From Geosiphon pyriformis uo1 (taxonomy: Eukaryota > Fungi > Glomeromycota): 64,000 nt of DNA. The translations under genes and the position numbers were made by a program. The notes below the pieces were generated by a model, which made no database searches, was not told the origin of the DNA, and saw nothing but the letters and a program-made list of their open reading frames with translations. Where the stretch lies: positions 335,905 through 399,904 of the forward strand of contig JAAOMT010000572.1 of NCBI GenBank assembly GCA_016748015.1, written 5' to 3'. Below, piece by piece: positions 25,658-63,581 of this stretch. Every line of letters starts with the position of its first letter. Within the stretch, counting starts at the first letter, position 1.

Positions 25658-26316
25658 TTAGTTTAAAAGTATATCAAGTGACATTCTTTCACGAATACGA
25701 TGAAATGCCTGCCGTTTTTCACTATGCCAAAAGTTTCTGATCATCAGTGGTGTACGACCTTGGGATGGTAAGCATTTCGCAATTTTGGCCCATTTATGGC
25801 CAATCGTCCCACATTTCTCGATTATGATTGATTTTTCTAGTTCGCTTAATGGCTCTTGGTTAACTTGGATAAGAAATAAAAATTGGAAAGATTAGGTCAT
25901 ATTAAATTTTAAGGCAAGATTTATAGCCCATCAAGAAAAACTAACTGGAAAGATCCAAATGATGAACCCAGCTAAAGATTTGAAGAAACTGAAATTTGTA
26001 AGAATAATAAATAGTATAAAAAAAAAACAAAAAACTCATGAATTCAAAATGTCTGAGATAAAATTTTTTGCCTTTACCGTTCTCTAATTTGTTTGTGAGT
26101 TCTTGTTCCATTCATTTCCTTTGAAATTAATCTCCAACGGCGCTTATGAACTGAAAAAAGTCGTCTAAGTTCTTGGTCTTCCTGGAAAAAATTAGAATGA
26201 TTAAGAGAGAATTCGAAGAAATTAAAAAAAAAAATTTCAAAGATTTTGTAAGAATAGAAACCAACTCTGCCTGTCCAAGGCCCAGTATTTTTTTTTGTTG
26301 CTTTTATTGGTGACAT
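25658..26316 (-). CDS. Small R2R3-type Myb transcription factor, cluster copy 1 (4 exons)
   Basis: Exons 26316-26266, 26181-26078, 25971-25946, 25863-25658. Product MSPIKATKKNTGPWTGR|EDQELRRLF..RWRLISKEMNGTRTHKQIRE|RWVHHLDLS|INQEPLSELEKSII..GHKWAKIAKCLPSQGRTPLMIRNFWHS..RMSLDILLN*. Confidence 0.9.
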
Positions 26317-27315
26317 ATGGTCCAAAGATGTGGTAGACAATTTTGCTTTCCCAATATTTATTGGAAAAAAGCAAAGTTGACATCCTGAAAGAATGGCAGT
26401 CTATCTGAATCTTCTTAATATATACAATTGTCACATGCTTTCTGAGTGACTGATTATCAAGATATTTAAGGGAGTAATTTTTTGAGTCATACTCAGGGCT
26501 TCTGAGGGTGAGAAGTTTAATTCGGGCCGAATCCTCCGGAAAATTGAATTATCCTAAAATATATATTATATAGGGTTTGTTTAACTCGAGAATTCATCAA
26601 AAATGATAAGGTTTCAGGAAAATATTGAACCATTTAAAGGAGGAGATGGATAAAGAATTACGTCTAGAAACATGGAACATGAAACATGAAACATTGAAAC
26701 ATTGAACATGAAAATATAGAATTTAAAATATTGATATAGTTGAGCACGAAAAAACCTGAATAGGACATAGTTTTTTATAAAAGCCCTTTTTTTTTATTAT
26801 TAAAAATAGGGAGAATTAGCAATGACATAATCGGAAATCAGAAAAATATCATCAAGCCAGAGGAAAAGTGTGATTAATATCATCATTACAAAGTTTAAAA
26901 ATTAAGGTTCTAAAGATTTGTGTAACTTTTTTTTTGAAAAAGCAACAACAACAACAATGATATGATTTGTTTAGATTGAAAATCTGTAAAAAACTAAAGA
27001 TGGATTAATCTCCTATTGGTAGATGATTTTTGAAAGCTAGATTGCATGTTGTAAACCATTTTGGCCAAGACATTTTAATAAGTTTTTTAATAACAATTTT
27101 TTTGAATATCTCTATGGAGTTTTCAACAAATTCTAAATTTTAAATTCGGCTTATTTTTAATTGAATAACTTTTTTTCGCATCAAATTATTTTTTTTCGGA
27201 GAATATATGATCGTCAAATAGGTACCAAGAGTACCACGATCAAAATATTTCACATCTGAAAGAATTATTAAATTATCAAGTCTTCAGAGAAACTTTAGAT
27301 TAATTATTTTTATCT

Positions 27316-27385
27316 ATGTATGTATGTATGCATGTATGTACGTACGTATGTATGTATGTATGTATATATGTATGTATGTATGTAT
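27316..27385. repeat. (TATG)n microsatellite, imperfect
   Basis: Read directly. Confidence 0.9.
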
Positions 27386-28237
27386 GATTGTTTATATTCT
27401 TATAGTGGTATCAACATTATTTCTAATATTTTATAGGTACTTTTTACTTTGAAAAAAAAAATTGTAATTGAAGGAGAAATATTTATTTATTTATTCATTT
27501 ATTTTTGGGACAAATAAGCTAGATATTATCATTAAAAAATATTTTCCATAGAAATTAATAATAATTATATCGAGGTACATCATCATATAAATATTAGTCA
27601 AAAAGAAATCCTTCTTTTCATAAAAACGGGTTAAAAAAAACCGACATGAATAAAGGCGATCTTCGATGTACTGAGACTGAAAAGAAAAACATGAACTACC
27701 CATCGTGGATTTAATGGTAACACAAAAAAATTCATTTACTAACATTTTTTTAATTAAGGTTGAAAGACAATGGCGTACACCATAAATATTTACCATAATC
27801 TAGACACGACAGAGATTTAATTAACGATACACTACACTAAACATATGTAGAAAGATTAAAAAAGAAGGTACAAATTGAATTTGGGGGAAGATCACAAAAT
27901 GGGCTACAAACGCCAATTCAATTTTTCGAGACCATTTCCAGAATTAGAAATCGGAACTTTTTTTTTGTTCCAAAAAATCCTCAACTAGAATTAATAATAA
28001 TAGTAAATTTAAAAAATTCAGGAAGCGCACAGACCATTATTAATATCTATTAAACGAAATTTACCTTTGAAATCTATTATGCACAGGAAACAACAAAATG
28101 CCGATGATTCGGTATTCAATGTTTTTTTATTATTATTTTAAAGTTGAACGTGATATCATGATACTAATGTTTTCATGATCACCTAAATGAAAATTTTTAA
28201 TGAGCTTTTGATCAGATTAATTATTAATATTTTCATC

Positions 28238-28394
28238 CTAATTTATTCTAAATCTAGCTTTTAAAAGGTTTTTATTTTATGTTATTTTATCTAATTTATT
28301 CTAAATCTAGCTTTTAAAAGGTTTTTATTTTATGTTTTTTTATCTTATTTATTCTAAATCTAGCTTTTAAAAGGTTTTTATTTTATGTTTTTTT
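28238..28394. repeat. 53-bp tandem repeat, 3 copies
   Basis: Unit CTAATTTATTCTAAATCTAGCTTTTAAAAGGTTTTTATTTTATGTT.. starts at 28238, 28291 and 28344. Confidence 0.92.
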
Positions 28395-28592
28395 AAAAAA
28401 TCAAAGTTTACAAACAAATAATTAAACTTATTTCTAAAATCTTTTAGAAACATATATTTTTGTTGTTATCTATATATATTTAAATTTATCGAAATTTTTA
28501 ATAAAATCGGATTATATTAAAACCTTATTTGAACGACTGGATAGAAAGAATTTTTTTTTTTTCTTTTTTTCTTTTTTTTAATGAAAGACAAT

Positions 28593-29545: not shown

Positions 29546-29576
<31 letters not shown>

Positions 29577-29686
29577 ATATATATATATCTCTGTTCCATT
29601 TTCAGACTATGATCAAATTGTTTTATTTTTTAAAATTTCTGTTTGTTTGCAAATAAAATTAATACCAAAATGAATATCAAAAATGG

Positions 29687-29687
<1 letters not shown>

Positions 29688-29740: not shown

Positions 29741-29742
<2 letters not shown>

Positions 29743-29749: not shown

Positions 29750-32700
29750 TGTATTAAATATTAATTTCTACCAAAAATAGGTTAAATTATGTCACTGTTT
29801 TTTTTTGAATTGAAGTTTATATTAAAGAAAACTGGTTATTTCTTGAATTATTTGAAAAATAAATACAATTTATGATGATGGTTATGATAATTATGATTAT
29901 GATTATGATGATTTATGATGATTATATTATGATCATATTATGAAAACCAAGTAAATAATTGCCACTTATTTTCCTTAAAATAAAATGTATTTCTTATTTT
30001 GTGCATTTGCATATTACAATATAAATATTAATTTCACATGACAAAAATACAATATTAAAAATTAAAATTTTAAAATGTTATAAAACCAAAGATAGAAACC
30101 GCAAATAAATGACGTAAATAATAACTTTTAATTTTGATAAGAAGTTTGTAATTCTTATATTAATCGTAACTTTTAAGTATAAACTTAGTTTTTTCAAAAA
30201 AAAAAAAAAAAAAAAAAAAAAAGGTGTTCTTAAAAGTTTTACAATAGACCAAAAATGTAAGATTAAAACACTTTTACATAAAAATAATAAATATTTGGTT
30301 TTTTATAAAATTAAATGCAATTAATTATTTAAAATTTTAATCTCATAATAATTATTCCAAATAAGAAAATGACACTACAATTGGTTGCAACTCCCCGATA
30401 AAAATTATACTACAATTTACCACAAATATTTTTTATTAAAAAGATAAATAGTTGAAAATATATAAAATAATTTTACAAAAATATAAATGATTCAAAATAA
30501 TTTTTTTCTGCAAATGTTTTAAATTGTATTAAAAATATATAAAAAAAAATATTTATGCTCATCTGATTTTTTATTAATTCAAATACTTTAGTAATTAAAT
30601 ATGTGTTTAAAATAAATGATTTTTTTAAAAGTTTTAATTTTTTATTAATTAAATGAATATACTAGTTTTTAAACAAAATAGTATTAAAGTATCACAATTT
30701 ATTGTGATACTTTAATTTTAACTATATTTGTTAAAGATAACTTTTTAAAAAAAGTATTTTTGAAAAAGTTAATAATTCGTGATAGATTGTGATAAAAAAA
30801 GTTTAAGAAATAACATTTTTTCAATTAAGAAATTCACATAATTTCACGCATCTTATTCTTAAAAGTGAATTGTTTCATTAATGAAGAAATATTTACACAA
30901 ACCTAAATTCATATTTTTTCATTAATTAAGATGTTTTATAAAATGAAATAAAAAGGCTTTATTTATAAATTTCAAAAAATTGGTTAATAAAATAATGAAT
31001 TAATAAATAAAAATTTATTTTTTAATGAAACATAATGTATCAAGTGATAAATAAAACACTCTATTTTTTATTCGTAATTTTTTTAATATAAAAGAAAAGT
31101 GCATAATTGCTTAATTAACGCTTTAAATAAAGTAAAAATAATTTTTTATTTTATTTTACCAATTATCAAGAAGAAAAAATTATTATTTTAAAATGAGAAC
31201 CTAAAAAAAAAATTAAAATTTCTGATTAAAAATGAAATATTATTTCTCAAAGCATAAGATTTTAAAAAATTTATTTTGATCAAATTTTAATTAAAATAAC
31301 ATTTTAAATTTAACTTTGTTTTAATCTTTTATAAATACATATTTTAATATTTTTAATTAAGGTTTTAAATATAAAGCTTAATAATAAAACACAAAATACA
31401 TTATAAATTTTTAATAATTTTTTTTTAATAATGATAATATTTGTTTTTTTTTGATTTTTGTAATATTTGTAAATTTTATAACCTATTTTTTACCATTACT
31501 GCTGCAATTTTTTAATCGTAATATTATTTTTATGATTATGATTATGATTATGATTATTATTATTATTATTATTAGTTGATAACTGGCCAAATTAATCTTT
31601 TTAATATTCAAATTTATTTATTTCTTAATTAATTTTTTTTTCAAAAATTTACAATAAAAATTAAATTTATTTTTTTATTACATTAACTAAGTACAGTTTT
31701 ATCATTAAAAAATATAATAAGTCATTATAATTAATAAAAATTAGTTTAAATTGAAAAACTAAAAATAAATTTTGTGTATCTATTTTATTAATACAACAAT
31801 TTAAATAATTTTTATATTATTTATAAAATTATTAAATTTCCAATTTTTTTTTGTTAATAATAAAATTATTATTTATTTTATTATTATTTAAAAAATTTTT
31901 ATTATATTTATTTTTAAATTTAAAAAATTTTTTAAGGATTTTAGTAATTAAAATTACCAATATTATTAATTTGAATTTTTTTTAAAAAAAAGTGCCAGAT
32001 ATCTAATTTTATAGTAAATTTGTTCTTAATAATTAATAAAAAAAGTGATTTCAATTACATAAAAACCAATATTATTTTCTGTGTTAATAGTACAAACTAT
32101 TTTTTATTTAAAAGTTTATTTTAGATAATAAATTTAATATTAATAAAATTATGTAAAAATTAAAAAATTTATTTTTGCATAATTTTTTTTTAAAAAAAAC
32201 ACCCAAATACTAAATTAGATATTATTTATTCGAAAATTTTTTGCCAACTAATAATAATTTTTTAAATATTATTATTAAAATTAATAGTGTTTTTAGAAAA
32301 AAAAACTATTTTTAATTTTTATGTTATTTGTCAAACTTTTAAAGTTAGATAATATTATAGTATAATTAAATTGTATTACATGTTGAACATAATTTGTTTT
32401 ATTTTTACAATTAATGCCTAAATATTTTTACAACTAAAAGAGCTTTTTGGATGATTGTTTTCTTAGACACAATGAAAAAAGTAGTGGTTGCTTCATTTTT
32501 TACTCTTTGCTTTTTTATGGTCATAAAAATTAAAAGAGAGAAATATACATTTTTTTGATATTATAATCAAAGTTTTTATATATGCATTTTAATTTCGATA
32601 ATTAATTTTTAATTTAAGTTTTATAATAATTTTTTTATTAAAATAAAAGATTTTCAAAGTATAAATAAAGCCATTTTACAAGTTTTAATTTTTTTCGACC

Positions 32701-33200: not shown

Positions 33201-35829
33201 TTATATCATTGCACTTTAATAAATTTATAATTTTTGTTTCATTTTAGGAAAACCATATGATTATAAATTTTTTCCAAAAACATAATATGGAGATAATATG
33301 AAACTCCATTGTCCGAATGTAAGATCAAGAGTTTCTCTGCAGTGAAAATCTCAGAAAAAACACACACATACACACACAAAATATCTCCCCCATGGGGATG
33401 AAATCAAATTTGGTTAAAATATAGAAAATTCTAACATGTGTGTCGTAAATTTTGCAGAAAAAACGTGTTGATCAAAGCATTATTAGTAACCATGCACATT
33501 TATAAGGAGACTGTGAAATAACAACTATCACAAAACTTAAATTTGTTGGGGCTTTATCCAGAAATCTTTATAGAATAATTTTCTCATTTCAACTGCGATG
33601 AGATATTATATTCGAAAATTTTTTTTTTAAAATTTCTCCTTTAATAATTATCCTTTTTATAATACATATTTTCAAGAAAAAAAGCCGAATAAACAGCATG
33701 AAAACAACGTTTTTCTTTATTATAAATTAATTGGTTAAAATTCTTATCAACAAATATGTAATTAATTTATGCTAATGTTCCCAAAACATCATAATATTTA
33801 TTAAATGGTATATAAAATCACAAAGAATTAGATATAATAGTATCTTTATCCTTTATAAGTCAAAATCATGTACCCCTTTTTCATTCACAATGGGAATCAT
33901 GTAAAAAATAAATTCAATTTAGTAAATGATCAGAAATTTTTTTTTCTTGAAAAATATACCTGATTACATTTCAATTAATAATTTAGGGTATAAATTTAAA
34001 AGTATTGCACAATAAAAAATAATTTTATGCGAGTCAGAAAGAAAAGAGAACAATAGTAAGGTTTCTTCAATACTTTAAATGCACAAACTGCTGGTCTGTG
34101 CTGCTGCATTTCAGCCTAAATCAATAAGAAAAGTTTCTATATCGAAAAAAAAAAGTCATAAAGTGAGTGTTAAAGTTTTCATGACCCGAAGGCATTACAT
34201 CATGAAAAAAAAAGAAATATATATAGTGAAAAATCAATAACTAATTTATTTTCTCTAATATACGGATAAATTTGTTTCAAAACGACAATGAAGGAATTGA
34301 CCTCCGAAATGATCATGGGGGTTGGGAGCTGGAAAATTTTCTCATCCTTTTAGTTTAAACATTAGGTAGATTAAAGTTCTATTATATATATATATAATTA
34401 TAATTTTTGGAAATTATTTTTTATTTTTATTTTCTATTGCTTTCCCCTCCCTTTCCCCCTCCCCCCCTTCAGAACGCCATATTCATATTTCCATTGATAT
34501 CATCAGAATACATCAATGTATACTTTTATCAATAGTTATGCATTCATTAATTCTTGAAAGGTCACAATGGTAAAATGTTTACGAGACACGAAATATTTGG
34601 CCAATGAAAAGGTTCACCTTTTTGGGAAATTTGTTGAATTGAGATTTGTCAATCTGATAAAGAAATATTCAATTTTTGAAATTAACTATCAATATAATAA
34701 ATTAAATTTTCACAATAGCATTAAATTATAAAATGTACATTTATTTATTTGGATCACTCATGTGATCTGACACTAAGGTTCTAGATATTGATGTAACTCT
34801 GCATCAGATAAATGATGCCAATAAAAGTAAAACATATTAAAAATGATTTGCATGGAATCTTCTTTATTTCCAAAAAACTAAAAAGTGTAAAACTTTTAAG
34901 ATTCATGAATATTTAAACTTTTAAAAAGTATTAGGTCCGAAATCCGAATATATAACCTATGGGAAAGTTGTGAAAATTTTTTGCCAAATAAATCTCATTG
35001 AATGTTTCTGAAAAGGAAGCTTGCGTAACTACTATACCAAGCAGCCGGTGCATTATCTTTGAAACAAGTATGATACAATATACTACGAGAACATACGATT
35101 TTCTGTCATCCCCGTAACTATTATACCAAAATAAGCATTGTACAATATACTAAAACGTTTCCAAGAGCAGAAAAAATTCAATATCACGATTTGCAATTTT
35201 AAGTAGAAAAACTAAAAATTGAGAGTTCTTAAGCTACCTCAAACTTAATAAAAGTTTTTCCGAGTATTATTTTGAACGAGATTACTCCTCCTCAAATAAT
35301 TTAATTGTTCTTTGTAAATTGGCAGGATAGAAAATTTTTTTAAGCAAAGAAAACTTTAATAATGAAATAAATTTATGGTGTAACAGTTGGGATAAAAAAG
35401 GCTAGTTTTTCAAATAGTCTTAACCCTTTAGACACTGCATCCGTTGTTTTAGTGAATACAAATAAGTAGAAATAATTCAGAGTGTGAAATTTAAAAAACA
35501 TATCCAGAAATTTGTACAATGTTTTGCCAACTGAATGAATAACGATGAATAATTTATGGAAAAAGATTTTCTCTTCGAAAGGTCCTAAAAAGCTTATTCA
35601 AAAATCATTCTTGAAACATTTAGTCATTGACTATGACCATGAATGTTTCACACGATACTCATTTTTGGATTTCTGGTTGTACATTTACAGTATTTCAACT
35701 TACATGTATATCGTATTTAAAAGATTGTGTTTTAAAATAATTTTTTTTTGGCTGTAATTATTAAGAAAATGATTGATATCATCATCTTACAAACATTGAC
35801 AACTGAAATAAAGCACCAATCTTTTTATT

Positions 35830-35862
35830 TACTACTATTACTACTAATACTACTACTACTAC

Positions 35863-35905
<43 letters not shown>
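35830..35905. repeat. Compound (TAC)n(TAT)n microsatellite
   Basis: Read directly. Confidence 0.9.
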
Positions 35906-36328
35906 TTAGATACAAGTTTTCTAATTATCTGGCTCTTCAAGAAAATCCCTGCTCATGTGAACAATTATCATTAGTACAAGATCCAATTAATTTTAACACA
36001 CAAGATTTTAAAACAGATAATGATCAAACCATTTTAAACTTGACTGTTCTAGACCTTATGAATTTTAATTTAGAAAAATTTTTGTCAAAGTAATCATCAA
36101 CTTTAACACATTAATCGATTGACTGATCGCGGATTATCTCTGATGAAAATCAGAGATAACGAATTACAATAGACTCGAATATTTTTTAAGATTGGCATGT
36201 ATGTATGTATGTATGTATATGTATATAATTGACAAATAAAAATGATAGAAAAAAAGAATGTACTTATTTTTGGGATTTTTAACTTTTTTTTACGTGTTCA
36301 TCAAGATAAAAAACCTTGAATTTAGGAC

Positions 36329-36955
36329 TTATTCACGTCTATTCAAAATGTAATCGATAGACATCCGATTGATCGGATTTTTGACCTTGCCTTTGACCCT
36401 CTGATGAGTCCAAAAACAATTTTTAATAGTTAGCTCCGAACGTCCCGGGAATAATTTAGCAATTTCTTTCCATCGTCGATTGTACTTTGAAGCATAAAAA
36501 AGAACTTTGGTTTTTTCATCATCGGTTAACGATTGGTTAGCGTCAACTAATTTAAAAAATATAAAATAGGATTAAGTTATGAGGCAATAAACTGATGTCC
36601 ATTCAAAGTCTCACAATTAGAACTTTTAATGGATACTCACGACCAGGTTGGAGATGATTGATCCATCTATATGGACATTAATAAATATTACTTTTTATTG
36701 AAACAATGAAATTTTTAATTTTAAAAAATTTTTATTTGCCTGTCCCGAATCTGACGATAATGGCGTGAATTATTCATCTCTTCTTGAATTTTTGCATAAT
36801 TCTGGCCACGTTTTTTGATCAATTCGATTAAACCTCTGTCTTCCTGATGAACAGAGAAAGATTAATTTTAATAAATTTGACAAAAGAAGTGATGAAATAT
36901 ATAATCAAATGTTCACTTCTGGAGACCAAGACCCTTTGTTTGTACTCTTAGACAT
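36329..36955 (-). CDS. Small R2R3-type Myb transcription factor, cluster copy 2 (4 exons, GC-AG intron 2)
   Basis: Exons 36955-36917, 36843-36740, 36666-36641, 36546-36329. Product MSKSTNKGSWSPE|EDRGLIELIKKRGQNYAKIQEEMNNSRHYRQIRD|RWINHLQPG|LDANQSLTDDEKTKVLFYASKYNRRWKEIAKLFPGRSELTIKNCFWT..RMSIDYILNRRE*. Entirely missed by the ORF track. Confidence 0.88.
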
Positions 36956-37055
36956 CTTAACGGAAAAAAAAGGTGGTTGATTGCTTTTTAAGGAGAGGAT
37001 ATGTTTTTCCAAACAAAAAAGATGATGAGTTTGAGAAAACGTACTTTGTTGTTGA

Positions 37056-37056
<1 letters not shown>

Positions 37057-37086
<30 letters not shown>

Positions 37087-37120
37087 AAGAAGAAGGAGGA
37101 GGAGGAGGAGGAGGAGGAGG
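37057..37120. repeat. (AGA)n(GGA)n microsatellite in the predicted 5' UTR of Myb copy 2
   Basis: Read directly; lies between a minus-strand TATAAA (37166-37171) and the ATG at 36955. Confidence 0.9.
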
Positions 37121-37165
37121 ATGATAATAATAATTGTGCTCTTTCTTGAAAGTATAACGTTGCTT

Positions 37166-37171
37166 TTTATA
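37166..37171 (-). promoter_or_regulatory. Candidate TATA box for Myb copy 2
   Basis: TATAAAAAG on the minus strand ~210 nt upstream of the ATG. Weak evidence in AT-rich DNA. Confidence 0.35.
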
Positions 37172-37533
37172 AGAAACTCTGCTATTTAATCAATATATCG
37201 TATGAGCAGAGTCATCCGAATTCTCAAAATTTTCTTCCCGAAGATATGGTCTATTTATTCTCAAGCGAGAATGAATTAAAATAATGTAAGCTATTTTTAT
37301 TTACATTTGATGTATTTTTTCCTTTGAAACTTTGAAAAATTGACTATCATAAACAAAATTTAAAATAAAAACTTTAAAGAAAACCTTTGAAAGAGGGATC
37401 CCATTTCCAAAGGCTTCAAATTTTGTAAATTAAAGTACTAGTATTTTTTCAAAGATTTCTTGTACAAGGTTAACACTTGATATATTGTTTCTTCATGTCA
37501 TGCATTTGTTCACTGGTTTTTTGTTACTGTAGG

Positions 37534-37553
37534 AGTAGTAGTAGTAATAATAG

Positions 37554-37617
<64 letters not shown>

Positions 37618-37660
37618 TGTTGTTGTTGTTTTTGTTGTTTTTGTTGTTGTCATTGTTGTT
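37534..37660. repeat. Compound (AGT)n(TGT)n microsatellite
   Basis: About 21 perfect AGT units at 37555-37617 followed by imperfect TGT units. Confidence 0.93.
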
Positions 37661-38780
37661 GCATATTTTTGAAGGACGACATAATTGCATGTCCTGTGTT
37701 TCTTGCTTTCCCCTAGCTCACGGGAAACTTTTATTGCCAGCCCACGAAAATATAATTACCTTTTTTTAACGAAATCGCCTTTTGATTTCATTCAAGATAT
37801 CCTCAATAAAGAAAGATGGCTGCATGAAGTCTTTTCAGGTTTTTTACATACACATAAATTCAGTTAGCATTTCTAGAAACAATGGTAGGCTTCGTTTCAA
37901 CGGTTTTTAAAATTTATCCCGAATGAGCTTTAGGACTTAATTAAGTAAAAATGAAGAGACGATCAAAAAATCTGCATCAATGAAAAATTACTCGAAAAGC
38001 TTAGTGATAAGCGCTATGTTAAAAGGATAATTTTTTCCGAGATCATTTCAGAAAATAAAAAGCATCATCTTGATATACTTTTATTGCCTAAAATTCTTTG
38101 TCAAATTTTTTTTGAATCATTTTTTTAAAATGGTTTATTTTTGCCTTATACATTAAATTTTCTTTTTTTCCTTTTTTTTTTTCTTTTGAATCTATTATAT
38201 TCGGGGGGGGGGGGTGTGGCATTGAATTTATTATGGCTTACCGAGCCACAATCTTGCCACTAACGCAAAAGGTCTTTTTTTATCTTATGTTAGTCTATTT
38301 TTTATTCAAGTAAATTAATCGGGATAATGAAAAACGAGTTATAAAGTTCTCGAGCCGCGTGACAAATTTTAAAATTGTAAAAAACGGTTTATCAGATACC
38401 TATCGGTAATATATTTTTTTTTTCATTAAATTTCGCCATATGATTACCCCAAAAAACAGCTGATCTCGAATCTTCAATAGCTGTTTGACACATGAAACTG
38501 CATCAAAGAACAATAACGCGCTATATTCCCCAAAAAAGAAGGTAAAATTTTTTTTTTGCATGCATAAATTTACAGCTGAAACGATTTCTCTCCAAAGATG
38601 CTAATTACCGTTTCCCGTCACACGGTTATTCCTACAGAAGGCGTTGAACATTGTTCACAAAACTCGGTCTTCCAGATAGCAAATTCAAGAAAAAAAATTT
38701 CAGATGTATCCAATTCTCATTAAAGGGTTACTCCAAATGGAAATAAGATATTTCAAAGTAAAAAAATAATAAAATTATTT

Positions 38781-38816
<36 letters not shown>

Positions 38817-39562
38817 GATATCCCTTAAAAATGCAAATGGAAAATCTCTCTTCGAACTGGTTTATCAGCTCATCTATTATCGTGCTACACAAAAGACAAA
38901 AATGACCATTTCCGCGAAAAAATATCAAGAAAAACAATGAAATGTTAATTTTACCCAATTTTGACAAAGTGACACTGCAGTTGCATTCAAAATTCAAATA
39001 GAATAATGGTAGGAAAAAATTTTCGAACAATGTTTTGATGTATATTAACGCCATTATACATTTAACCACATCCTAATAATAATAATAATAATAAGTAAAA
39101 TAATGTTTTATATTCGGGCTGTTAAAACTAAATTGTTCTTCTTTCCAAAAATGGCATCTATTGAATGGGAGGATGATCCATCAAGACAAATACATTGAAA
39201 CGTAATACATTTTGGAAAGACCAAGTGTCCTGCATTCCATATCCTTAAAGCGAGCCAAAACCGTTTCTTGATATTCAAGATAACACACAAGTTTCTTTGA
39301 AGCATCCCGAGGAACAATCACCGGATACTTTTTCTCAATAAGTCAGCACCATTATTCTTGGTGGTGAAACATTTTTTGTATACATTCTGGAACCGCATGC
39401 GTCATGACAAAAATTTCTTTAACCAATTTTTCTCGAGAAACCGACAAATCTTAATCTTTTATAGACAAATAAGAGAAAAACGCCATATTGTCTGACGGTC
39501 CTCAAAATTTTTCACCAATGTTGTGTCACTGGTAACTATTTCTTAAAAGTTTTTTTTTACAT

Positions 39563-39629
<67 letters not shown>

Positions 39630-39979
39630 AAGGAAGTGCATAGCCAATTGTGTGCCCTAATCGGAAAAATGATTAAACCTGATCGGATTAGACCAACTTT
39701 GTTTAGCTGTTTTTTCAAACGAAATCATAATTATAAATATAAAACCTCTGGCAATCAAACCTCAGGGTGGTTCAAGTTCCTTCACGACAATTTTGGGAGA
39801 AATCCCAAATTACAATTCAAAGTATAACTACCACATCTTTTATCTTTTTGACGACTTCAACCTACCAATTTTCTTTTCCACACACACCCACACACACACC
39901 ACACACACACACAAAACACGTACACATACACGCATACAAATTCCTTTAAAAAACTATTAATTCTCTTGAAACTTGAACC

Positions 39980-40725
39980 ATGAAAAATTTTTTAACGTGT
40001 GATCAAGACTCTACTCAAAAACCAGAATACATTGTTGGTCCTTGGAGTGAAGAAGTAATTTCTTTCATTTTAAGATTTGCTTCCTTTTATTAATATCTGT
40101 CAAAAGATTAAAAAAATTGAAATTCAATTTGTTTTTTTAAGGAGGATAAAAGACTGCAGCAGTTATTTTCCATTTATGACCGTCAATGGCACTTGATCTC
40201 TATGGGTCTCAAGGAAACGCGAAGTTATAAACAAATTCGTGAACGGTAAAGTTTCTTGTAAATTCAAATTTTGATATTCATTTCACCTGACCCTAATGCG
40301 TTTTTTTTCTCTCTTTGTTTATCTAATTAATAGATGGGTTAACCATTTAGATCCCAATTGTAAGTTTAGAATCAAGTTTTTGTTGTTGTTGTTGTTGTTG
40401 TTTTTTGTAAGATTCTTAAATTTTTTTATTTTCCTACTATTCGATAAAAGTGAACAAAAACCCATTAAGTGATGAAGAAAAAGCAACTATATTACGAATG
40501 TACGATGCTTTTGGAGCAAAATGGGCATTCATAGCGAAAGCCTTGCCATCACGTGGCCGTACTCCTTTAATGATCCGAAACTTTTGGTATAGCGAACAAC
40601 GGACAGAATCAACACGTATTCAAGCAAAAATGTCAATTGATTCTCTTCTCAACAACGATTGTCAATCGGGCAAAGAACTAGTATTTCGAAATAAAAGACG
40701 ACGAATTAATTCAATGTCACGATGA
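39980..40725 (+). CDS. Small R2R3-type Myb transcription factor, cluster copy 3 (4 exons)
   Basis: Exons 39980-40054, 40142-40245, 40334-40359, 40451-40725. Product ..VGPWSEE|EDKRLQQLFSIYDRQWHLISMGLKETRSYKQIRE|RWVNHLDPN|LNKNPLSDEEKATIL..GAKWAFIAKALPSRGRTPLMIRNFWYS..KMSIDSLLN..NKRRR (NLS-like). Confidence 0.92.
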
Positions 40726-40779
40726 TAGAAATTATAACACCTCAAATTCTTACCTATAAATAATACTATTAACATAAAC

Positions 40780-40827
40780 ATCATTAACATCATCATCATC
40801 ATTATTATTAACATCATAATCATAATT

Positions 40828-40865
<38 letters not shown>

Positions 40866-40892
40866 TATTATCATCATCCTCATCATCATCAT
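40780..40892. repeat. (CAT)n-rich microsatellite in the 3' region of Myb copy 3
   Basis: Read directly; followed by (CCCTC)n at ~40968-41000. Confidence 0.9.
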
Positions 40893-43060: not shown

Positions 43061-43780
43061 ATGAGTTCCAAAGCACCTTCTTCCTTTACTGTACAACCGT
43101 CGTTACCAGAGGATTCTTTCCCGTCCCTTTCATTTTCCCCTCCTCGAAAAAGAAAGTATATACAATGGACTAATGATGTAAAAAAAATTAAAATTTTTCA
43201 AGAAAACTTGAAATTTCTCTCTTATATTTTATTTTATTATTTTATTTTATTTATCAGGAAGATCAAGCTCTCAAAACTCTGGTCCCAATGTATCCCAAAG
43301 AATATGCTAATATAGCAAAAAACTTTTTTCCTGGAAGGAGTGGTAAACAAATAAGGGATAGGTATTTTATGAAAATTTGTGTGTTTCTTTTGCTAAAAAA
43401 AAAATTTTAATGAAACTAGTTTGATTTACATTATATAAAGATGGACCTCCATTTCTGACCCAAAAAGTAAGCCATTATAAATAAGATTTTTAATTTTGTT
43501 TATGATTTATTTTATTAACCTTTTTTATGCAATCGAATATTTTGCTATCATTATTTTTTTCAATTTATCTTTTATAGTTGATAATTCCCCTCTCAAACCT
43601 GAAGAAAAATTCCGGATCCTTGAACTTTACAAGACACATGGATCCAAATGGACCACAATTTCTGAAGAATTGCCTGGGCGCTCTCCTTCAAAAGTGAAAG
43701 AATTTTACTATGGACATGCTCGAAAAAATCAAAAGAAGAAGCGGGATTCAAAAATGTCAGTAGAGTTCATTTTAAATTAA
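43061..43780 (+). CDS. Small R2R3-type Myb transcription factor, cluster copy 4 (4 exons)
   Basis: Exons 43061-43177, 43258-43361, 43441-43466, 43578-43780. Product ..PRKRKYIQWTND|EDQALKTLVPMYPKEYANIAKNFFPGRSGKQIRD|RWTSISDPK|IDNSPLKPEEKFRILELYKTHGSKWTTISEELPGRSPSKVKEFYYG..KMSVEFILN*. TATATAA at 43007-43013. Confidence 0.92.
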
Positions 43781-50449: not shown

Positions 50450-51778
50450 CTAGTTGAAATCAATTAACGGGTCAAATTCCACAACCAATTTGTTTGTTTT
50501 CCACTGTTCGAGATCTGCGATAAGGGATTCCCATTCTTTTTCATTCCTTACTGATAAGACTACATTCTCTGGACCACGACACAAGAGATATTCGGTATTG
50601 AATTGAAAACGATTTTTAATCACAGAGAGAAACTCGGAAAGAGTGGAAGATTTTTCATAAAAAAATTGATGCTTCCCCGTGGGAAACTTCAACGATACAA
50701 AGATCTATTAGATAGTAATTGACGAATTTATTCATTTTAAATGAGTTGATATTTTGTATAAAGCCAAATATTCAGAAATTAGAACTTACCTGATCGATTT
50801 CGAAATTTCCACATTCCAATTCCTTTACTACTGATGCAGTTTGTACTGCTGTCTTTTCAGATTCTAAAAATTTAGGCTTAACCTTCTCGATATAATTCAA
50901 TTTTCCCTTCCCTTTATCGTGAATTTCATTGGGTATTACAGGCCTCCAATTGGTTAAAGTTTTCGAATCTGAGTGAGATTTTTGGTGGTGTTGGGGTGGA
51001 TTTTTGAATGATTTTGGATTGACCTTTTTTTTTTAATAAAATTTTCAACATGAGAAGGCAGTTTTTTTCAAGATCCAAATTATTTTTAAAGATTTCAAAG
51101 AATAATCGTTCCAACCTTTAGCAACTTTGGTCTTAAGGATTCAAAAATACACCTTAATTCCCACAATACGCTCGGATCAACGGTTTTAGTTGGAGTAAAT
51201 AATATGGAGGAAGCATTCTTTAATTTCCCATTGAGAGGGTCTAATTCAAGTGGGTAATGTTGGGTACAGCGTCCAGATGGATGTTGAAGGTACTGCTCAA
51301 AATATTTTAACAATAGAATTCGAATAAAGTACAATTTCAATCAAAGAAAAAAACTTACATGTTTATCGAAATTGGGTTTCACTTGGACGGCGAGTTCACG
51401 GAAACTGGTGACCCATATTTTCAAAATTTCACTTATAGGAATTACAAATTCTTGCAATTGGTTAATACAAATAGAGAGACATCTTTCGTTAGGCCGAAAA
51501 GAAAAAACAATCACAGAATTGGGACCAGAAGAGACCCATTTCTTGGTTGGAATGGCGTAAAAATGAGAGATTGAAAAATTAATCCAGCGGCTGGCAGCTT
51601 GGTTAGACCTATCTAATTTTAAAGCTTTCGGTGGGGTGAAATGGATAAAAAACTTATAGAAATTTAAGAAAATTCTCATAAAATTTCAAATTTCAAACCC
51701 AAATCCCATGAGCTTACCACTCAAATTCCCTTTCTCACGAGTATTAAATCTTTTGGTTTGACCATAATTTTGGGACAT
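50450..51778 (-). CDS. PH-like + C-terminal PB1-like domain protein, copy A (5' end uncertain)
   Basis: Exons 51778-51718 (open to an acceptor at 51819), 51624-51359, 51292-51116, 51023-50790, 50704-50450 join in phase. Last exon IFVSLKFPTGKHQFFYEKSSTLSEFLSVIKNRFQF..VLSVRNEKEWESLI..KLVVEF has a beta-grasp/PB1 pattern. Confidence 0.72.
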
Positions 51779-54276: not shown

Positions 54277-54956
54277 TCATGATTTGTAATTCTTTGTGAG
54301 TAGGAAATCTAAGGACATTTTTTCGCGGATGCGATAAGAAGCTTGCCGTTTTCTGCTGTACCAATAATTTCGTATCATTAAAGGCGTTCGGCCTTTCACA
54401 GGTAAGGAATTTGCAATCAAGGCCCACTTGTGGCCAATAGTACGGCATTTTTCAGCAATGATAAATTTCTCCGTATTGCTTAATGGCGAACGATTTACTG
54501 AATTTCCAAAAAAGTTAATCATTCATTCAGATGATCTAGTGTCATAACTCTAAATTAAGTTGACAATGATGCTCATTTTGAACTTACTATTGGTATCTAA
54601 ATGATGAACCCATCTGTCAAAAATATAGGTTCAAAAGTAAAGGAAAGTATTTGTGAGGAATTTTTTTCGATTTTAAAATAGCTGCTTTACAAAATTTTTT
54701 TTACCTATCACGAATTTGTTTATGAGTACGAGAACCATTCATTTCACGTGATATGATATGCCATCTTCCGTTGTACATTGAGAAAAGACGACGAAGCTCT
54801 TGGTCTTCCTGAAATTAGAGAGAAAAATATTTCATTAAAAAAAAAGGTTGAGGTTTTGACTGAAGCTCATAAATGAAACTTTAGAAAATTTCTCATATTA
54901 AATACCTGCGTGGTCCAAGAACCAGTGTTATTTTTTACCTCTGGCCGTTTTTTCAT
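54277..54956 (-). CDS. Small R2R3-type Myb transcription factor, cluster copy 5 (4 exons; alternative in-frame ATG at 55052)
   Basis: Exons 54956-54906, 54808-54705, 54613-54588, 54497-54277. Product MKKRPEVKNNTGSWTTQ|EDQELRRLFSMYNGRWHIISREMNGSRTHKQIRD|RWVHHLDTN|INRSPLSNTEKFII..GHKWALIANSLPVKGRTPLMIRNYWYS..KMSLDFLLTKNYKS*. Confidence 0.92.
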
Positions 54957-57900
54957 TTCTTTTATATGAGATTTGGGTTTGGTGATTTTGGTGGTTTTGG
55001 TTTGAGGCAGATAAAATTTGCCACGAAATATTTTATTTTTTGAAGGGTGCATAAAATCTTGCTCCTTTGAACGGAGAGTTTATAAAGGATTTTTGCGGGA
55101 AAAGCTTTCCGAGAAGCTCTAGAATATACATTGTGAATGAATAATAATGTTCAAATTTTCAACATTAAAAATCAAATGTTCAAGCTTCTCGAAAGCCAAA
55201 TATTTGCTCATTTTCTTTCATCCGGATAAATTGATTCTCCACCCTTTAAGACTTTACAACAATGATTTTTTTTGTTTGTAATTTTCAAATGGAAGAAATT
55301 TCTATTTATTTTGTTGTCAAATAAAATTTTTTACTAAAAAGTCATGAGGCTCTATTCAATTTTAAAAATATTCCAAATATCGATTCTTTTGATTCAATTT
55401 ACAAAAAGAAAACCCTTCCCACATTTTATCTGCTGACAGCCAACAGAACAGCTATCATTTATAAAATTGAAGATTTGAATAATTTTGATATCAAATAACT
55501 TAACAAAAGTTTTTTTTTCGTAATATTTAAGCTTCAATAGATAAGAATATAAAAAACAAACCAGTCTATTTATTAAAGTCTTTTCTATTGATAAATATGT
55601 TATTGAAAATAAACTTTTCATATCTTTTAGACATCCGAGAAACCTTTAATTGCGTTATCAAATACCGATACATAAGATTTATCTTTAAAATCTCATGGTT
55701 TTCTAAAAAAGATTAAATGTTCTAGGAACCTATCGAGGAAGCTTAAAATTTTATATAGCAATGTAAAATTGGTCTTTCAAAATTACCAGTTTCAATTCAC
55801 AACTTTATTCTATCATCCCCAAATTAATGAAAAGGCTCCCAAAACTGATTTCCAGGCTGAAAGGGTACCAAATTCAGATGAATCATTCTAAGAGACTACA
55901 TCTATTTAGGTAAACGCCTGATTAATCAATTGAATTTCCCTAATGCAGAAAATAAATGACGATCGAAAGTCTGTTTTGAAAATCAATTGCCCGATTGAAC
56001 TACGCATTCAGGGGTTCGAATCGGAGCTTTTCCTTATCATTGATTGCCAACCCATGAATATCTAAAGCGAATGAGCATGAGCCAAAAAGGCTAGAACATT
56101 GAAGCTCGAAAAAAAAGGGCATTAGTTTTTTTTATTCTATTCACAGAATTTGTAAAATTATTGAGGGATAAAATTCAAAAAAAGTACAATCGACATATTG
56201 ATTCTCAAAGATTATATAATCGATCTTTTTTTTTAAACTCTGATGAAAAACATTATATTTGCCAAATAATAGAATATGCTTTATCAATCGAATGATCATC
56301 TTTAGAATGTGAAATTATTATAGTTAATAATAGAAAATCAGAAGCTTTTTGATAAATTCACACTTAAAAGTTCCAATACTAGAAAACTGGATCATATCAA
56401 ATATGATAAAGTTTTATTAATTAAATAAAAAAAAATGGCAAAAATCCTGAACAATATTAAATAATAAATTATTTTTGTGATAAAAAGTTGATTTTCAATA
56501 AAATCATAATCAAAAGATTATAAAGAGAAATTCAATTTATTAATCAAGTGTTGCAAATAAATAAATAGATTTAACATACATAATATGTTAAGAAATTTCA
56601 GAAAAAATAAGAAATTTTTTTTATAATTATAATTGTGTAAAATATTTTTTAATTTTTCACATAATGAAAAAAAAATTCAAAAAAAAACAATAATCAAAAA
56701 TTAATAATTAATTGTCAATTTATGATGATCCTTTTTTTTTATGAAAAAATTTAATAAATATTAGTATTTAATATTTAACAAATTTTATATAATAATATTA
56801 TTAAAGTTCGAGTGAATTAGATAAAGAGCGTGTTGATCAACTTGTCATTTATTTCTTCTATCAATGGCATTAAAAAAACAAAAAAAGATTAATGAATTTA
56901 ACGTAAAAAATTTTATCAAATCGAAAAGAATATATATATATATACTTTGAATTACATTCACTACTTTCAACGATCTTTAATCCTTTTTTAAGGAAGATAC
57001 TAGATATTATATTTGTGAGATCAACTTGATTACAAATATCTGATCTCAAAAAAGTAATTTGCTTTGACAACCAATTAATTCTGACACTCATTGTCTTTGA
57101 CGCAGATTCAGACTTGTAAGAGGTAGAAGCCAATTAAGGGGAACCTAACAGGGTTAAAGGAAATTATCATTGTACATTTAAAATAAAGATCGAAGGATTG
57201 ATGAATATCAGATAATTTTTCTAAAATCCATATAAATCCAAGAATGGGAATTTATAAAAGTCGATTGGCAATTTGGAAAATGTGATATGTTATGTTTGAA
57301 GGGGTAAAATTTGAGTTGCGGGAAATAAATTAGTAACTACGCCTATTAAATGTTGATATATAAAAATGGTGTATCAAAATAAAAATATTTTGCTATAAAA
57401 AAAGCATACTTTGGTAGATCTTATATTGGGAAGTAATCATCCGAAACCTTAATTTCAAAGGCACTAAAGAAAATCAAAATTAGTAAGTTTAATTTGTTGA
57501 TTAAAATATAATAGTTGAACATACTCTTTTTTTTATTGATTTTGATTTGTTGATTTTATAATAAAGAACACATAACCACTTCTATTTACAAAAATATAAT
57601 TTGATAAGAAAATTTGAGAAAAAATATAAAGAACAATAATAAAATTTTAAATTTATAAACATAATTATCTAAATATATATTTTATAATTGTTTCTCTTTG
57701 ATTTTATCTTTTTTTGAATTTAAAAAATATCATTGTCTTTATATTTTTTCAGATTTTCACTAAAAAAAACATTATACTTTTAATTAAATTGTTTTATTGA
57801 TATTTATATTCAACATTATAAAATTAATCATAAATAAAAAATTAAAATTGTTTTTTAATATAAAATTTTGAAATAAATATATTAATTTCTTTTCAAATAT

Positions 57901-58237: not shown

Positions 58238-59767
58238 TTATTCCAAAAAATATGGGTTTCTTGATCTTAACCTAAAACATATATATTTAAAATACATTAC
58301 TTGATCCATCAACCAAAGCTCTAACAGTAGCTGTGGGGACGGATCAACGCTATGACTTAATAATTCTAATGCGTTATTCCAGTCTTTTTCATTACGGATG
58401 GGAAAATATTCAAAAATGTTATGGGCAAAGGGGAACTTACAAGTAAATTCTGTGATGTCCCTAATTTGGCATGAATCTTGAATTGCCAACTTAAATTCAT
58501 TCCATGACATCGAAAAAGGCACTTCAAATGTTGCTCCCTCATCATCAAAAGAGTTGGTATTTAATGAAAAGTTGAAGTGTAGATTAACCAAGAATGATTC
58601 TAGGTTTTTTGGTTCGACATTTTTGGATGATAATATATCGGTGTTCTAAATAAATGGTATTAAAAGAAATTTTTGAATTAAAGATTTCATCAAAAAAGAA
58701 TTTATGCTCAGAATTAATTATAAAGTACCTCATCCTCGGAAGAATTTTCAAAAATTGGGGCGTTGCAACGACGGCATTTGGAGGTAGCATTAGGATTTTC
58801 CTTCATATTGATCCTAATTTGTAGAATGTAACGAATATGCAGCCAAATCATTTCAAGCCTTTGCTCAGGGATATGTTCATTGGCAACAAAAGTGATCGTT
58901 GTTGCGTTTTCTATGTACAATTTTTATTAAAACTAAATCAAATCAAAAAAGATCATAAATTTTTCAAACAAAGCTCACCAATCCATTTGGTAATCTCTGC
59001 AACGATTCCCAATGTCTCAACGACAAGTATTTGGATCTAAAAAAAATTATTGCTTCAAAATGAATCGGTATAATCCTAAAACTCTTGAATGAAAACTTAC
59101 CAAATTCTTTTGTTGAGAATTCAACGTTATTGATAATGTGTCACGGCCCACCTTATTAATAAAATCTACAGCAGCAATGGGGATATACAATCTTCCCATC
59201 TTTTGATTCATTGCGACTGAAATCTTTCGCGCCATGTATCGATAATGGAAACTGGGCTGTTGACCACCATTCATATCAATGGTGAAAGTCTCTTCTCCAA
59301 ATCTGATTTCCCGAAGTTTCAATTGTATATATTCATTTCGATCAGAACGCTGCTGTGTTTGATGATGACCATCGAGGTTCGAAGTTGGAAGAACATCATC
59401 AATTCCAAACTTTCGATATTCACTTGGGTAAGATGTTGAGGTGAAGCCCCAGCTTTGGTCATTCCGCTACTTGTTTCAAGTAAACTGGTTGGTATGCATC
59501 TATCAAAAATGATAAAATAAATTGACAACTATTGGTTTACCTCATTTGCAAAAACCTTTTTATTTCTGTTATATTGAGTATAGTTTAGATGAACTGCTGT
59601 GGCATATTCTTAAGGTCAAATTTATCAACGACAAAATTCACTCGTGCAAAAACTAGACATAAAACTTTACTTTCTGTTCGCTGGGCACCAATTTTTTGAA
59701 GTGATTCCGTGGTTTCATCCAAAGATGAGATGCGAGGATCGTAGATTATCTCAGGTGACCCTGACAT
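58238..59767 (-). CDS. PH-like + CxxC + C-terminal PB1-like domain protein, copy B
   Basis: Exons 59767-59671, ~59609-59541, 59466-59101, 59036-58979, 58910-58729, 58645-58238 join in phase (first two less certain). Clear paralog of copy C: RNEYIQLKLREIRFG vs RNEYVQLRCSSLKFG; PEQRLEMIWLHIRY vs PEQRIELIWLHVAY; PIRNEKDWNNAL vs RIASEHEWISAV. Confidence 0.8.
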
Positions 59768-61319: not shown

Positions 61320-62654
61320 CTAACTATGTGACCATAACTCCATACATTCTTGATTGCTTATATGATCAACAGCTGATATCCATTCATGTTCACTTGCTAT
61401 TCTAAAAAACTCTTCTGTATCTTGCTCGGTCACGCCTTTATATACCATTTCTTGAATCTCAGGGATTTGTAGTGTTTCCTCAATTGCCTTCTTAATCTCA
61501 CTGTATGGTGTGAAGATGGGAAATTCAAATATTGGGATTCCATCATCAGGCGCTTTGTCGTTATCCCAATCGAAATGAAACTTGATGAGAAGTTTTTCTC
61601 CAGGTGAAGGAATCTTTTTTAGTTCGGATGCCACCTTTGAGAAGATTAGATATTTGAGAAGAAATAATTCTTAAGTTTTCGAGAAAAGTGAATGCTTTTT
61701 ACCGTGTCTCGTTTACAAATTTCAATGTTCGCCGAACAAACGAAACATTTTCTACAATCTAACTCTATAACACCCAGTTGGATATCTCTGCTAAGCATAT
61801 AAGCTACGTGCAGCCAAATCAATTCGATCCTTTGCTCCGGGGTACTTTTATTACAAATAAACGTAATATCTTGAACACTTTCTAAATGAAAGATTGTATT
61901 AGATACCAACTTTGGAGTATTTGGAATAATAATTATCTAAATACCAATTATCTGCGCAATTTGCAAGCTTCCTTCACTAGCTTCCTCATTCTCACTCGTC
62001 ACATGCATCTTAATCTATACAAAATTAGAATCGTTCTTTTGACAAACATTAATTGGATAAGCTCGAAAAAGTGGCACAAAATTAAAAACATACCAAATGC
62101 TTACGGTTCTCAAAAAGCTTCACCACTAATGAATCATTTCCTACTTTGCTCACGGCTTCCATCGCTTCAATCGGAATAGAAACGCAACCTAAATACTCAT
62201 TCATGGCGATGGTCATTCTACCATCCAAATAACGATAATGCATACTTAGATTTCTTCTGCCATGCTCTTCAGCGCCCAGGATAAAATCACCAAACTTCAA
62301 ACTTGAACATCGCAATTGAACATATTCGTTCCTATTAGGGTCATTCGAGTTGGGAAGATTAGGAGGTAAGCTTTGTCTTTTGGCTTCTTGTGGAGCTGAG
62401 CTAGAGGCGATAAATGATTTATGTTGCTCATCAAGAGAATTAAGTTGTCGAGATAACTTGGAAACAGAGTTTGATAAGGAACTAGAAATCCCGTTGTTAA
62501 GATAGGTTGGTTCAGAATCAGTCATCGTATAACTTTTATAACTGGGATCCTTAAAGTTTTTACGAAGTCTATTCTTCGCTTGAGCTGGAAGATTATAAGG
62601 AACCACGGTCATTTGCCTGGAGTGTCTCTTCGATTTTGGTGTAGGTAGGGACAT
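61320..62654 (-). CDS. PH-like + CxxC + C-terminal PB1-like domain protein, copy C (4 exons)
   Basis: Exons 62654-62094, 62014-61945, 61881-61703, 61634-61320 with GT-AG introns at the same positions and phases as copy B. Disordered basic/Ser-rich N-terminus. Confidence 0.85.
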
Positions 62655-62919
62655 TTTCTCAATCTGTCTATTTTTGAAAAAAAGGAAACTTTCCTTCGTA
62701 CAGCTTAATGTCAATCCTGATCATTCTAATAAATTTATTCCGTTAAAAAAATGCCAATTTCAGAGTTTGATTAAATTTTATCATTTTCTTTGAATCATAT
62801 TCACTAATATATCGATTGTATTTGCTGATCTAATCAATTGAAAATTAAAACATTTGCTAGTCAAATATGATTAAAAGAAATGTAGGACAAATGAAAATCT
62901 AGTTTACACCAAACCAATT

Positions 62920-63581
62920 TTAATTCAAAATGTATCCCAAACTTCCTTTGTTACCTGTACGCTCGTATTGGTTTTTAAGACGGTCAAACATATTTTGAAT
63001 TTTTCTGTTTTGATTCATGGCATAATTTTTGACTTGACGCGTTGTTCGACGTGAATTTGGATCAAAAGAAAGCTCTTTTGCGATAGAATCCCAATCAGAT
63101 GACCAACTAGGACAGCGCACTCGTGATAAAATAATCTCTTCTTCTTTAGGGGAAAGTAGGCTTTTATTTACTGATATTTTTTGAAAGAAAAAAAAAACAA
63201 ATTAGGTTCAATTCAAAATTATTAAAAAACGTAAAAATTTTTGTAAAAAGCCAAAATTTTACTCTTTGGATCGAGGTTGTAAATCCAGCTGTTTGAAAGA
63301 ATTTTCAAATAAATTTTTTTTAACTTTCAGGACTCAAAAATATGAGAAGCGTTTAGTAACTCTTACCGTTCACGACAAGAATCTGGTGTACGGTTAGGCA
63401 AATCTTCACTAATAGTTCGCCAAGGATTAGGATTTTGTTGAGAATCATAAGGTTCTATCCGCGATATCAGGAGCCTGTCCTCCTTTTTTAAAAATATTAA
63501 ACACCAATGTTAGTATCTTAAATTTAAAATTTTTGCAAAGAAATAATTTTATACCTCAGGGGTCCATTTAGAATTTGGCAT
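62920..63581 (-). CDS. Small R2R3-type Myb transcription factor, cluster copy 6 (4 exons, most divergent)
   Basis: Exons 63581-63555, 63482-63367, 63288-63263, 63170-62920. Product MPNSKWTPE|EDRLLISRIEPYDSQQNPNPWRTISEDLPNRTPDSCRE|RWIYNLDPK|INKSLLSPKEEEIILSRV..SDWDSIAKEL..RRTTRQVKNY..GSLGYILN*. Confidence 0.88.

Follow-up and report, generated by a model that had tools for sequence, protein, structure and literature searches.

Structures of the DNA-binding domain formed by Myb repeats R2 and R3 are available for c-Myb, A-Myb and B-Myb (PDB 1h88, 1mse and 1a5j), proteins that additionally carry repeat R1, a transactivation domain and a negative regulatory domain. Fungal two-repeat Mybs, such as Aspergillus FlbD, have the R2R3 domain at their N-terminus and are generally described as longer, single-copy, dispersed developmental activators. 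In plants, R2R3-MYB repressors, usually of 250-350 amino acids and also grown in number in tandem, end in a short repression motif for a corepressor of the Groucho/Tup1 class, namely the ethylene response factor-associated amphiphilic repression (EAR) motif, LxLxL, which binds TOPLESS. Further short hydrophobic motifs are the animal engrailed homology 1 (eh1) consensus, FxIxxIL, and the N-terminal IxIxxLL motif of MATalpha2, which contacts the WD40 domain of Tup1 (Copley 2016, PMC4943189). Here, a 64,000-nt stretch of the Geosiphon pyriformis genome (the window, whose coordinates are used throughout and whose contig is labelled C477) is described as the site of a cluster of six small R2R3-Myb genes, G1 to G6. 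The explanation that is favoured for it as a whole, with moderate confidence, is that of an ancient array of tandem genes from a small R2R3-Myb subfamily, whose products may act as sequence-specific repressors through the Tup1-Cyc8 corepressor.

Relative to these systems, the Geosiphon proteins find their best structural-sequence match in c-Myb and its kin, with which they share the six-helix fold and the cores of the recognition helices, but they lack R1 and both regulatory domains, the whole protein measuring 128-165 amino acids. With FlbD they have the N-terminal R2R3 domain in common, whereas the Geosiphon genes are minimal, clustered and provided with an eh1-like tail. The combination of R2R3 with a short C-terminal motif and tandem growth recalls the plant EAR repressors, although lineage and intron positions are unrelated. 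Regarding eh1 and the MATalpha2 motif, the Geosiphon tails agree with both in their hydrophobic spacing, phi-S-[ILV]-x-x-[IL]-L, and also with the screen pattern [VI]xx[IL][LM], but their first position is usually Met and not Phe, and the Myb class is not among the eh1 carriers of Copley (2016, PMC4943189). No paper on these Myb genes was found in the literature.

The six genes, predicted from sequence, occupy positions 25658-63581 on strands -,-,+,+,-,- (Table 1). A scan of the window by tblastn with Myb-like pieces of open reading frames (ORFs) located exactly six loci at 25.6-63.6 kb, for which four-exon models were built by hand after three-frame reading. All AG...GT/GC combinations were also enumerated blindly and scored by a hidden Markov model (HMM) of the family; the same six models emerged, and the window yielded no further one. 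None of them contains an internal stop, and all six are interrupted at three common sites by introns of phases 0, 2 and 1. Exon 1 ends just past the first Trp of R2; exon 2, of 104 nt (116 nt in G6), ends within the Arg codon preceding the third Trp of R2; exon 3 is in every case a micro-exon of 26 nt that encodes R-W-x-x-H-L-D-P, the end of the R2 recognition helix; and exon 4 contains R3 and the tail. The length of the micro-exon is constant in every modelled member with both flanking introns, that is, in 11 of the 12 Geosiphon loci and in all members from Ambispora and Paraglomus. Splice sites are GT-AG throughout, the sole exception being the GC donor of G2 intron 2 (36739-36740); every other donor in the 21 modelled family genes is likewise GT. 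Both the hand-built and the blind models are thus in agreement with the first-pass annotation, which had reported six intact genes of about 130-160 amino acids with the same three intron positions and phases and without internal stops. Nonetheless, the common intron positions, while real for the six genes, do not mark the cluster as such, since they turn out to be a family-wide trait found in three genera. Overall, the identity of the locus as a cluster of six Myb genes appears highly probable. Database searches were made exon by exon or with database proteins identical to the models, spliced models being used only for alignment, trees and substitution counts.

Table 1. Myb genes of the cluster and interleaved genes. 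Exons are given in order of transcription, the third exon of G1 to G6 being the 26-nt micro-exon; PF00249 scores are in bits.
Feature	Position	Strand	Exons	Product	C-terminal motif (position)	PF00249 score	Remarks
G1	25658..26316	-	26266-26316, 26078-26181, 25946-25971, 25658-25863	128 aa	RMSLDILLN (25661-25687)	exon 4 36.5; exon 2 31.3	
G2	36329..36955	-	36917-36955, 36740-36843, 36641-36666, 36329-36546	128 aa	RMSIDYILN (36341-36367)	25.2	
G3	39980..40725	+	39980-40054, 40142-40245, 40334-40359, 40451-40725	159 aa	KMSIDSLLN (40627-40653)		basic tail after motif
G4	43061..43780	+	43061-43177, 43258-43361, 43441-43466, 43578-43780	149 aa	KMSVEFILN (43751-43777)	40	
G5	54277..55052	-	54906-55052, 54705-54808, 54588-54613, 54277-54497	165 aa (133 aa from second Met)	KMSLDFLLT (54295-54321)	36.1	
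G6	62920..63581	-	63555-63581, 63367-63482, 63263-63288, 62920-63170	139 aa	KGSLGYILN (62923-62949)	exon 2 24.9; exon 4 18	
G7	C370:5915-6538						beyond the right edge of the window; family HMM model
G0	C477:282.2k						intron 2 lost, exons 2 and 3 fused; introns 1 and 3 kept
N1	50450-51700	-					multi-exon gene without Pfam match
N2	58238-59530	-					multi-exon gene without Pfam match
N3	61320-62714	-					multi-exon gene without Pfam match; start about 270 bp beyond the G6 stop

In GenBank, the annotated copies, G2 to G5, are labelled as hypothetical proteins. The entries for G3 (G9A89_003508, P0151) and G4 (G9A89_003509, KAG9291405.1, P0016) coincide with the models presented here. That for G2 (G9A89_003507, 114 aa, P0027) skips exon 3, thereby avoiding the GC donor, and that for G5 (G9A89_003511, 118 aa, P0021) skips the 26-nt exon together with the start of exon 4, the R2 recognition helix being removed in both by the loss of the micro-exon. 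Considering that the exon left out is in frame, and that it specifies the most conserved peptide of the family, these two entries are taken to be micro-exon misses.

The proteins follow a single plan, in which a short basic N-terminus precedes a c-Myb-type R2R3 domain, and 10-30 variable residues (the spacer) separate this domain from a hydrophobic motif at the C-terminus; they show no other domain. When compared with the Pfam profile PF00249 (Myb_DNA-binding, cut-off 24.4 bits), R3 as encoded in exon 4 scores above the cut-off in G1 to G5 (25.2-40 bits) and below it in G6, while the R2 fragment in exon 2 alone reaches 20.7-31.3 bits; G6 is, therefore, a degenerate R2R3 member. The family profile matches the c-Myb R2R3 structure (PDB 1h88) over both repeats with an E value of 1.3e-42, profile positions 12-111 falling on c-Myb residues 58-157, and it also matches B-Myb, WER and the Trichomonas proteins MYB21 and MYB3. 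In agreement with this, the AlphaFold2 (AF2) model of G3, with a mean predicted local distance difference test (pLDDT) value of 78, displays the six Myb helices (residues 24-37, 41-47, 54-65, 76-89, 93-99 and 107-129) at pLDDT values of about 90 or higher, the last one reaching residue 129 and being followed by a short, less confident helix across the tail motif.

Within this fold, the first Trp of R3 is replaced by Leu in the family (P-L-[ST]-x-x-E-K), and the third one is Ala or Val in G6 and in two further members, G7 and G0. The recognition-helix cores K-Q-x-R-E-R-W and [KR]-N-[FY]-W are retained in most copies, with G4 as an exception, in which Glu replaces the conserved Asn of the R3 recognition helix and T-S-I-S replaces x-N-H-L. 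Variation also affects the positions that we take to be equivalent to c-Myb N136, N179 and N186, the numbering being that which we assume for the c-Myb-DNA structures. Column entropies over 24 family members are lowest for helix 3 of R2 (1.05 bits), helix 3 of R3 (1.36 bits) and the C-terminal motif (1.68 bits), as against 2.1-2.3 bits for helices 1-2 and 2.78 bits for the spacer, the recognition helices and the tail motif being thus the most conserved segments. All six window genes have this motif, with the consensus [KR]-M-S-[ILV]-x-x-[IL]-L-N, close to their C-terminus, as do most other members from Geosiphon, Ambispora and Paraglomus. It is degenerate in a few copies (both members of a pair on contig C650, C650a/b, and the Paraglomus copy Poc_10_b), and in G0 it reads F-S-L-G-F-I-L-N, the nearest of all to the animal eh1 consensus.

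Myb repeats are abundant in this genome: at least 339 candidates exist, and the 150 of them that were scored all exceed the cut-off. Dense matches on contigs C669, C507, C520, C596 and C788 correspond to multi-repeat genes contained in a single ORF, which resemble the genes studied here in their Pfam Myb domain and in being clustered, whereas the subfamily has two repeats, three introns and about 12 copies. In a census of the 128 Mb genome with an HMM of exon 4, tail motif included, the six window genes score 92-118 bits and the multi-repeat genes 36 bits or less, and about 12 distinct subfamily loci are recovered, seven of them on the contig of the window. Matches outside the window lie on C370 (two), C477:282.5k, C650 (two), C722 and C700. 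The one at C370:1112-1357 is a duplicate of G6 in a contig overlap, G6 being thus counted twice genome-wide: C370:1-2189 is 100% identical to window positions 61812-64000, and C370:5640-5701 repeats the final 62 bases of C477. Since these end sequences are identical, C370 is considered to overlap and continue C477. The seventh copy, G7, lies on this continuation, which bears out the earlier expectation that the cluster extends beyond the right edge of the window. Together with G0, eight members (G0, G1-G6 and G7) are found in about 122 kb. The four remaining ones are located elsewhere, as singletons on C700 and C722 and as an inverted pair on C650 (304-307k; +/-), the only young duplication of the family, with 86% protein identity, a synonymous rate (dS) of 0.29 and a nonsynonymous to synonymous rate ratio (dN/dS) of 0.27. 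With about 12 loci in the subfamily, and with the abundant Mybs belonging to the multi-repeat family, six genes in 38 kb are not what a genome-wide profusion of such genes would produce by chance.

Divergence within the cluster is deep. Protein identity among the six window genes ranges from 31 to 68%, and their introns are no more similar to their counterparts than shuffled introns are, so that the impression gained by eye of strongly diverged proteins with unrelated introns holds upon measurement. Across the 15 window pairs, the proportion of synonymous differences (pS) is saturated at 0.65-0.84 and that of nonsynonymous differences (pN) amounts to 0.23-0.51, pN being lower than pS in 15 of 15. 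Because this saturation does not allow dN/dS to be estimated for the paralogues, an orthologous pair was used instead: G3 and its Ambispora gerdemannii orthologue show a pN of 0.094 (29.8 differences at 316 sites) and a pS of 0.85 (73.2 at 86 sites). Computed alongside, G1 and G5 give 0.20 and 0.82, respectively. With pN well below pS, above all in the orthologous pair, purifying selection is clear, and a dN/dS near 1 is not what these comparisons reflect. The cluster had been called old and selectively maintained, and both qualifications stand, the former owing to silent sites that are saturated in all paralogue pairs and to the counterparts of G2 and G3 in Ambispora.

These counterparts were found with G3 exon 4 as query, which led to the Ambispora gerdemannii protein P0001 (158 aa, 80-83% identity). 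On its contig, a G2-like gene lies 4.3 kb upstream of the G3 orthologue on the opposite strand, mirroring the arrangement of G2(-) and G3(+), so that at the level of genes the divergent pair is kept in synteny between both genera. In Paraglomus occultum (CAJVPJ010000010.1, 1690-21750 of the examined stretch) seven members occur in about 20 kb, six of them on one strand; all seven have the 26-nt exon and six a recognizable tail motif. In the P. occultum record, Myb domains are annotated in only four members, and one unannotated copy overlaps a called gene of 46 amino acids on the opposite strand. Single members were found in P. brasilianum and on a second contig of P. occultum. All named members of the subfamily come from early-branching Glomeromycotina, namely Geosiphon, Ambispora and Paraglomus. 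No named match from Glomerales or Diversisporales came up, but the searches able to reveal one were word-limited or swamped by other Mybs and do not establish absence; a metagenome member (P0038) used as query matched only itself, and the ESM Atlas returned just generic Myb clusters. The nearest fungal outgroup found is made up of small Mybs of Podila (Mortierellomycotina), without a clear tail motif. One of them, a 154-aa R2R3 Myb of Podila humilis (P0208), contains downstream of R3 the residues S-L-N-G-F-L, which MAFFT aligns with the G6-group tail motif, either by chance or as the trace of an older motif.

A tree of 28 rows and 112 columns was calculated under LG+C20, after an earlier version. 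It unites G1 and G5 (support 99/97), places as their sister the pair of G3 and its Ambispora orthologue (99/95; both joined at 97/96), and groups G6 with G7 and G0 as (G6,(G7,G0)) at 99/95. G4 is joined to G2 and the second Ambispora gene (80/87; G2 and the Ambispora gene 92/75), and the Geosiphon gene on C722 goes with the unclustered Paraglomus genes (93/77). Thus, at least three lineages of the window (G3, G2, and G1 with G5) predate the split between Geosiphon and Ambispora, and G4 and the G6 group are at least as deep.

Whether the clusters go back to one ancestral cluster is less evident. In a rather plausible alternative, to which we assign somewhat less than an even chance, those of Geosiphon and Ambispora on the one hand and that of Paraglomus on the other would have grown by tandem duplication independently, from one or two ancestral genes. 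The deep nodes leave room for it, being unresolved: forcing the seven Paraglomus genes together costs 5.7 log-likelihood units, and with an approximately unbiased test probability (p-AU) of 0.28 their monophyly is not rejected, a result compatible with a separate origin of their cluster. The loci also lack a common flanking non-Myb gene: when those of Ambispora and Paraglomus were compared with the window by tblastx, only Myb exons matched. On the contrary, both clusters contain very old paralogues, and the first tree placed the G6 clade, if weakly (82/76), with two genes of the Paraglomus cluster, a position that the 28-row tree leaves unresolved.

Since the tail resembles eh1 and the fungal Tup1-interaction motif, the proteins are tentatively proposed to be sequence-specific repressors that recruit Tup1-Cyc8. 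They would bind Myb-type DNA sites via their conserved recognition helices and would repress transcription by docking the C-terminal motif on the corepressor, at the WD40 domain of Tup1-Cyc8; paralogues might differ mainly in expression timing or partner surfaces, and less in core DNA specificity. A match to Tup_N (PF08581) is present in the Geosiphon genome at C418:297265-297363, with 31.8 bits against a cut-off of 28.7 bits. Conserved [VI]xx[IL][LM] motifs have been described as weakly enriched in Schizosaccharomyces pombe factors that interact with Tup11/12 (Copley 2016, PMC4943189). The DNA-binding half of this mechanism is suggested by homology and conservation, the corepressor half by motif resemblance only, and the mechanism as a whole is put forward as a possibility that falls short of being the probable one.

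Several observations weigh against it besides this difference between its halves: (i) the enrichment in S. pombe factors is termed not robust by Copley himself (PMC4943189), (ii) the confidence of AF2 for the tail motif is only moderate and the motif was modelled undocked, (iii) the degenerate R3 of G6, G7 and G0 and the Glu of G4 imply that copies need not all bind DNA alike, (iv) the window shows no excess of canonical Myb sites, YAACKG, with 54 found versus 58 +/- 7 expected, and (v) the gene models are themselves predictions from sequence, a search for sequencing runs at 36300-43800 having listed none from RNA. On account of the YAACKG count, auto-regulation through such sites is set aside.

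The tail could, alternatively, serve folding, dimerization or localization in passive competitor Mybs, which would have no effector and would act by occupying Myb sites or titrating partners, as the single-repeat CPC/TRY proteins of plants do. Proteins of 128-165 amino acids that comprise just a DNA-binding domain and a nine-residue motif would suit such a role, and so would the AF2 model, in which the motif forms a short helix prolonging the long helix 3 of R3. Nonetheless, the motif persists in Geosiphon, Ambispora and Paraglomus, whereas the spacer preceding it varies freely, a combination typical of short linear motifs that bind partners, and competitor Mybs are accordingly considered an unlikely explanation, albeit one of some weight.

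A bolder version of the repressor proposal would regard the genes as a co-regulated battery of Tup1-recruiting Myb repressors, linked since the ancestor of Glomeromycotina as an analogue of the clustered eh1 homeobox genes and involved in life-stage or symbiosis control in arbuscular mycorrhizal fungi and in the Geosiphon-Nostoc association; this seems improbable to us. It is still harder to sustain that the linked, diverged Mybs form a specificity locus, a mating-type-like locus or a stage switch for symbiosis or development. Old paralogues still linked in three genera and the repeat-rich, AT-rich DNA that harbours the cluster would be consistent with such a locus, but no allelic divergence is seen (the sole overlapping contig of this one assembly, C370, is 100% identical to the window over the overlap), four family members lie elsewhere in the genome, and the recognition helices are conserved and not diversified. 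In Glomeromycotina, moreover, it is homeodomain genes that make up the candidate mating locus. Finally, decaying or neutral tandem duplicates or gene-prediction artefacts, which the non-canonical GC donor of G2, the R3 of G6 below the Pfam cut-off and the two deviating GenBank models might suggest, are already contradicted by frames open over four exons in all six genes, by saturated silent sites with pN well below pS, and by a 26-nt exon that encodes the same peptide pattern in every copy between unrelated introns, and have next to no probability.

Regarding the surroundings of the cluster, the window is AT-rich, with a G+C content of 27-32% in its genic parts and 14-20% in the long spacers. 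The genes had been described as separated by long non-coding tracts, which is only partly the case: the AT-rich spacers do hold repeat relics, but three genes of unknown function, N1 to N3, are interleaved between G4, G5 and G6. N2 and N3 share 35-39% identity, whereas the kinship of N1 to them is a visual resemblance for which BLAST finds no similarity. About five loci of the N family exist genome-wide, others being at C637:728.7-729.8k and C709:352k; none stands beside other Myb loci, and no homologues of N1-N3 were found beside the Ambispora or Paraglomus Mybs. A two-family module of Myb and N genes is, therefore, rejected, and N1-N3 are not treated as part of the Myb system. The spacer between G1 and G2 contains at 31700-32420 a dispersed repeat, with dozens of copies at 66-77% identity on many contigs, which is probably the relic of an old transposon. 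The G2-G3 spacer has long runs of triplets and of single nucleotides (35829-35905, 37529-37617 and 39568-39626), and a (CAT)n microsatellite of 38 units occupies 40779-40892, about 50 bp past the G3 stop codon. To the left of the cluster, at 19983-20786 on the + strand, lies an intronless gene for a 267-aa Sel1-repeat protein (Pfam Sel1, E 5e-32).

Altogether, the genes represent a conserved, previously undescribed set of minimal R2R3 Mybs that carry an eh1-like tail, occur in clusters in early-branching Glomeromycotina and are candidate repressors. To our knowledge, it is rare in fungi for clusters of transcription-factor genes to remain linked for very long times, and next to nothing has been learned of how transcription is controlled in Glomeromycotina, organisms that cannot grow unless a partner is present. 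The immediate practical yield is a set of corrected gene models, given that two GenBank models lack the 26-nt exon coding for part of a recognition helix. Should the link to Tup1 fail, an ordinary though unusually old tandem Myb family would remain; if true, the finding would extend eh1/Tup1-type motifs to Myb factors. A small, well-defined family in three early-branching genera, simply built from a DNA-binding domain and a candidate corepressor motif, offers in any event a handle for studies of expression and DNA binding.

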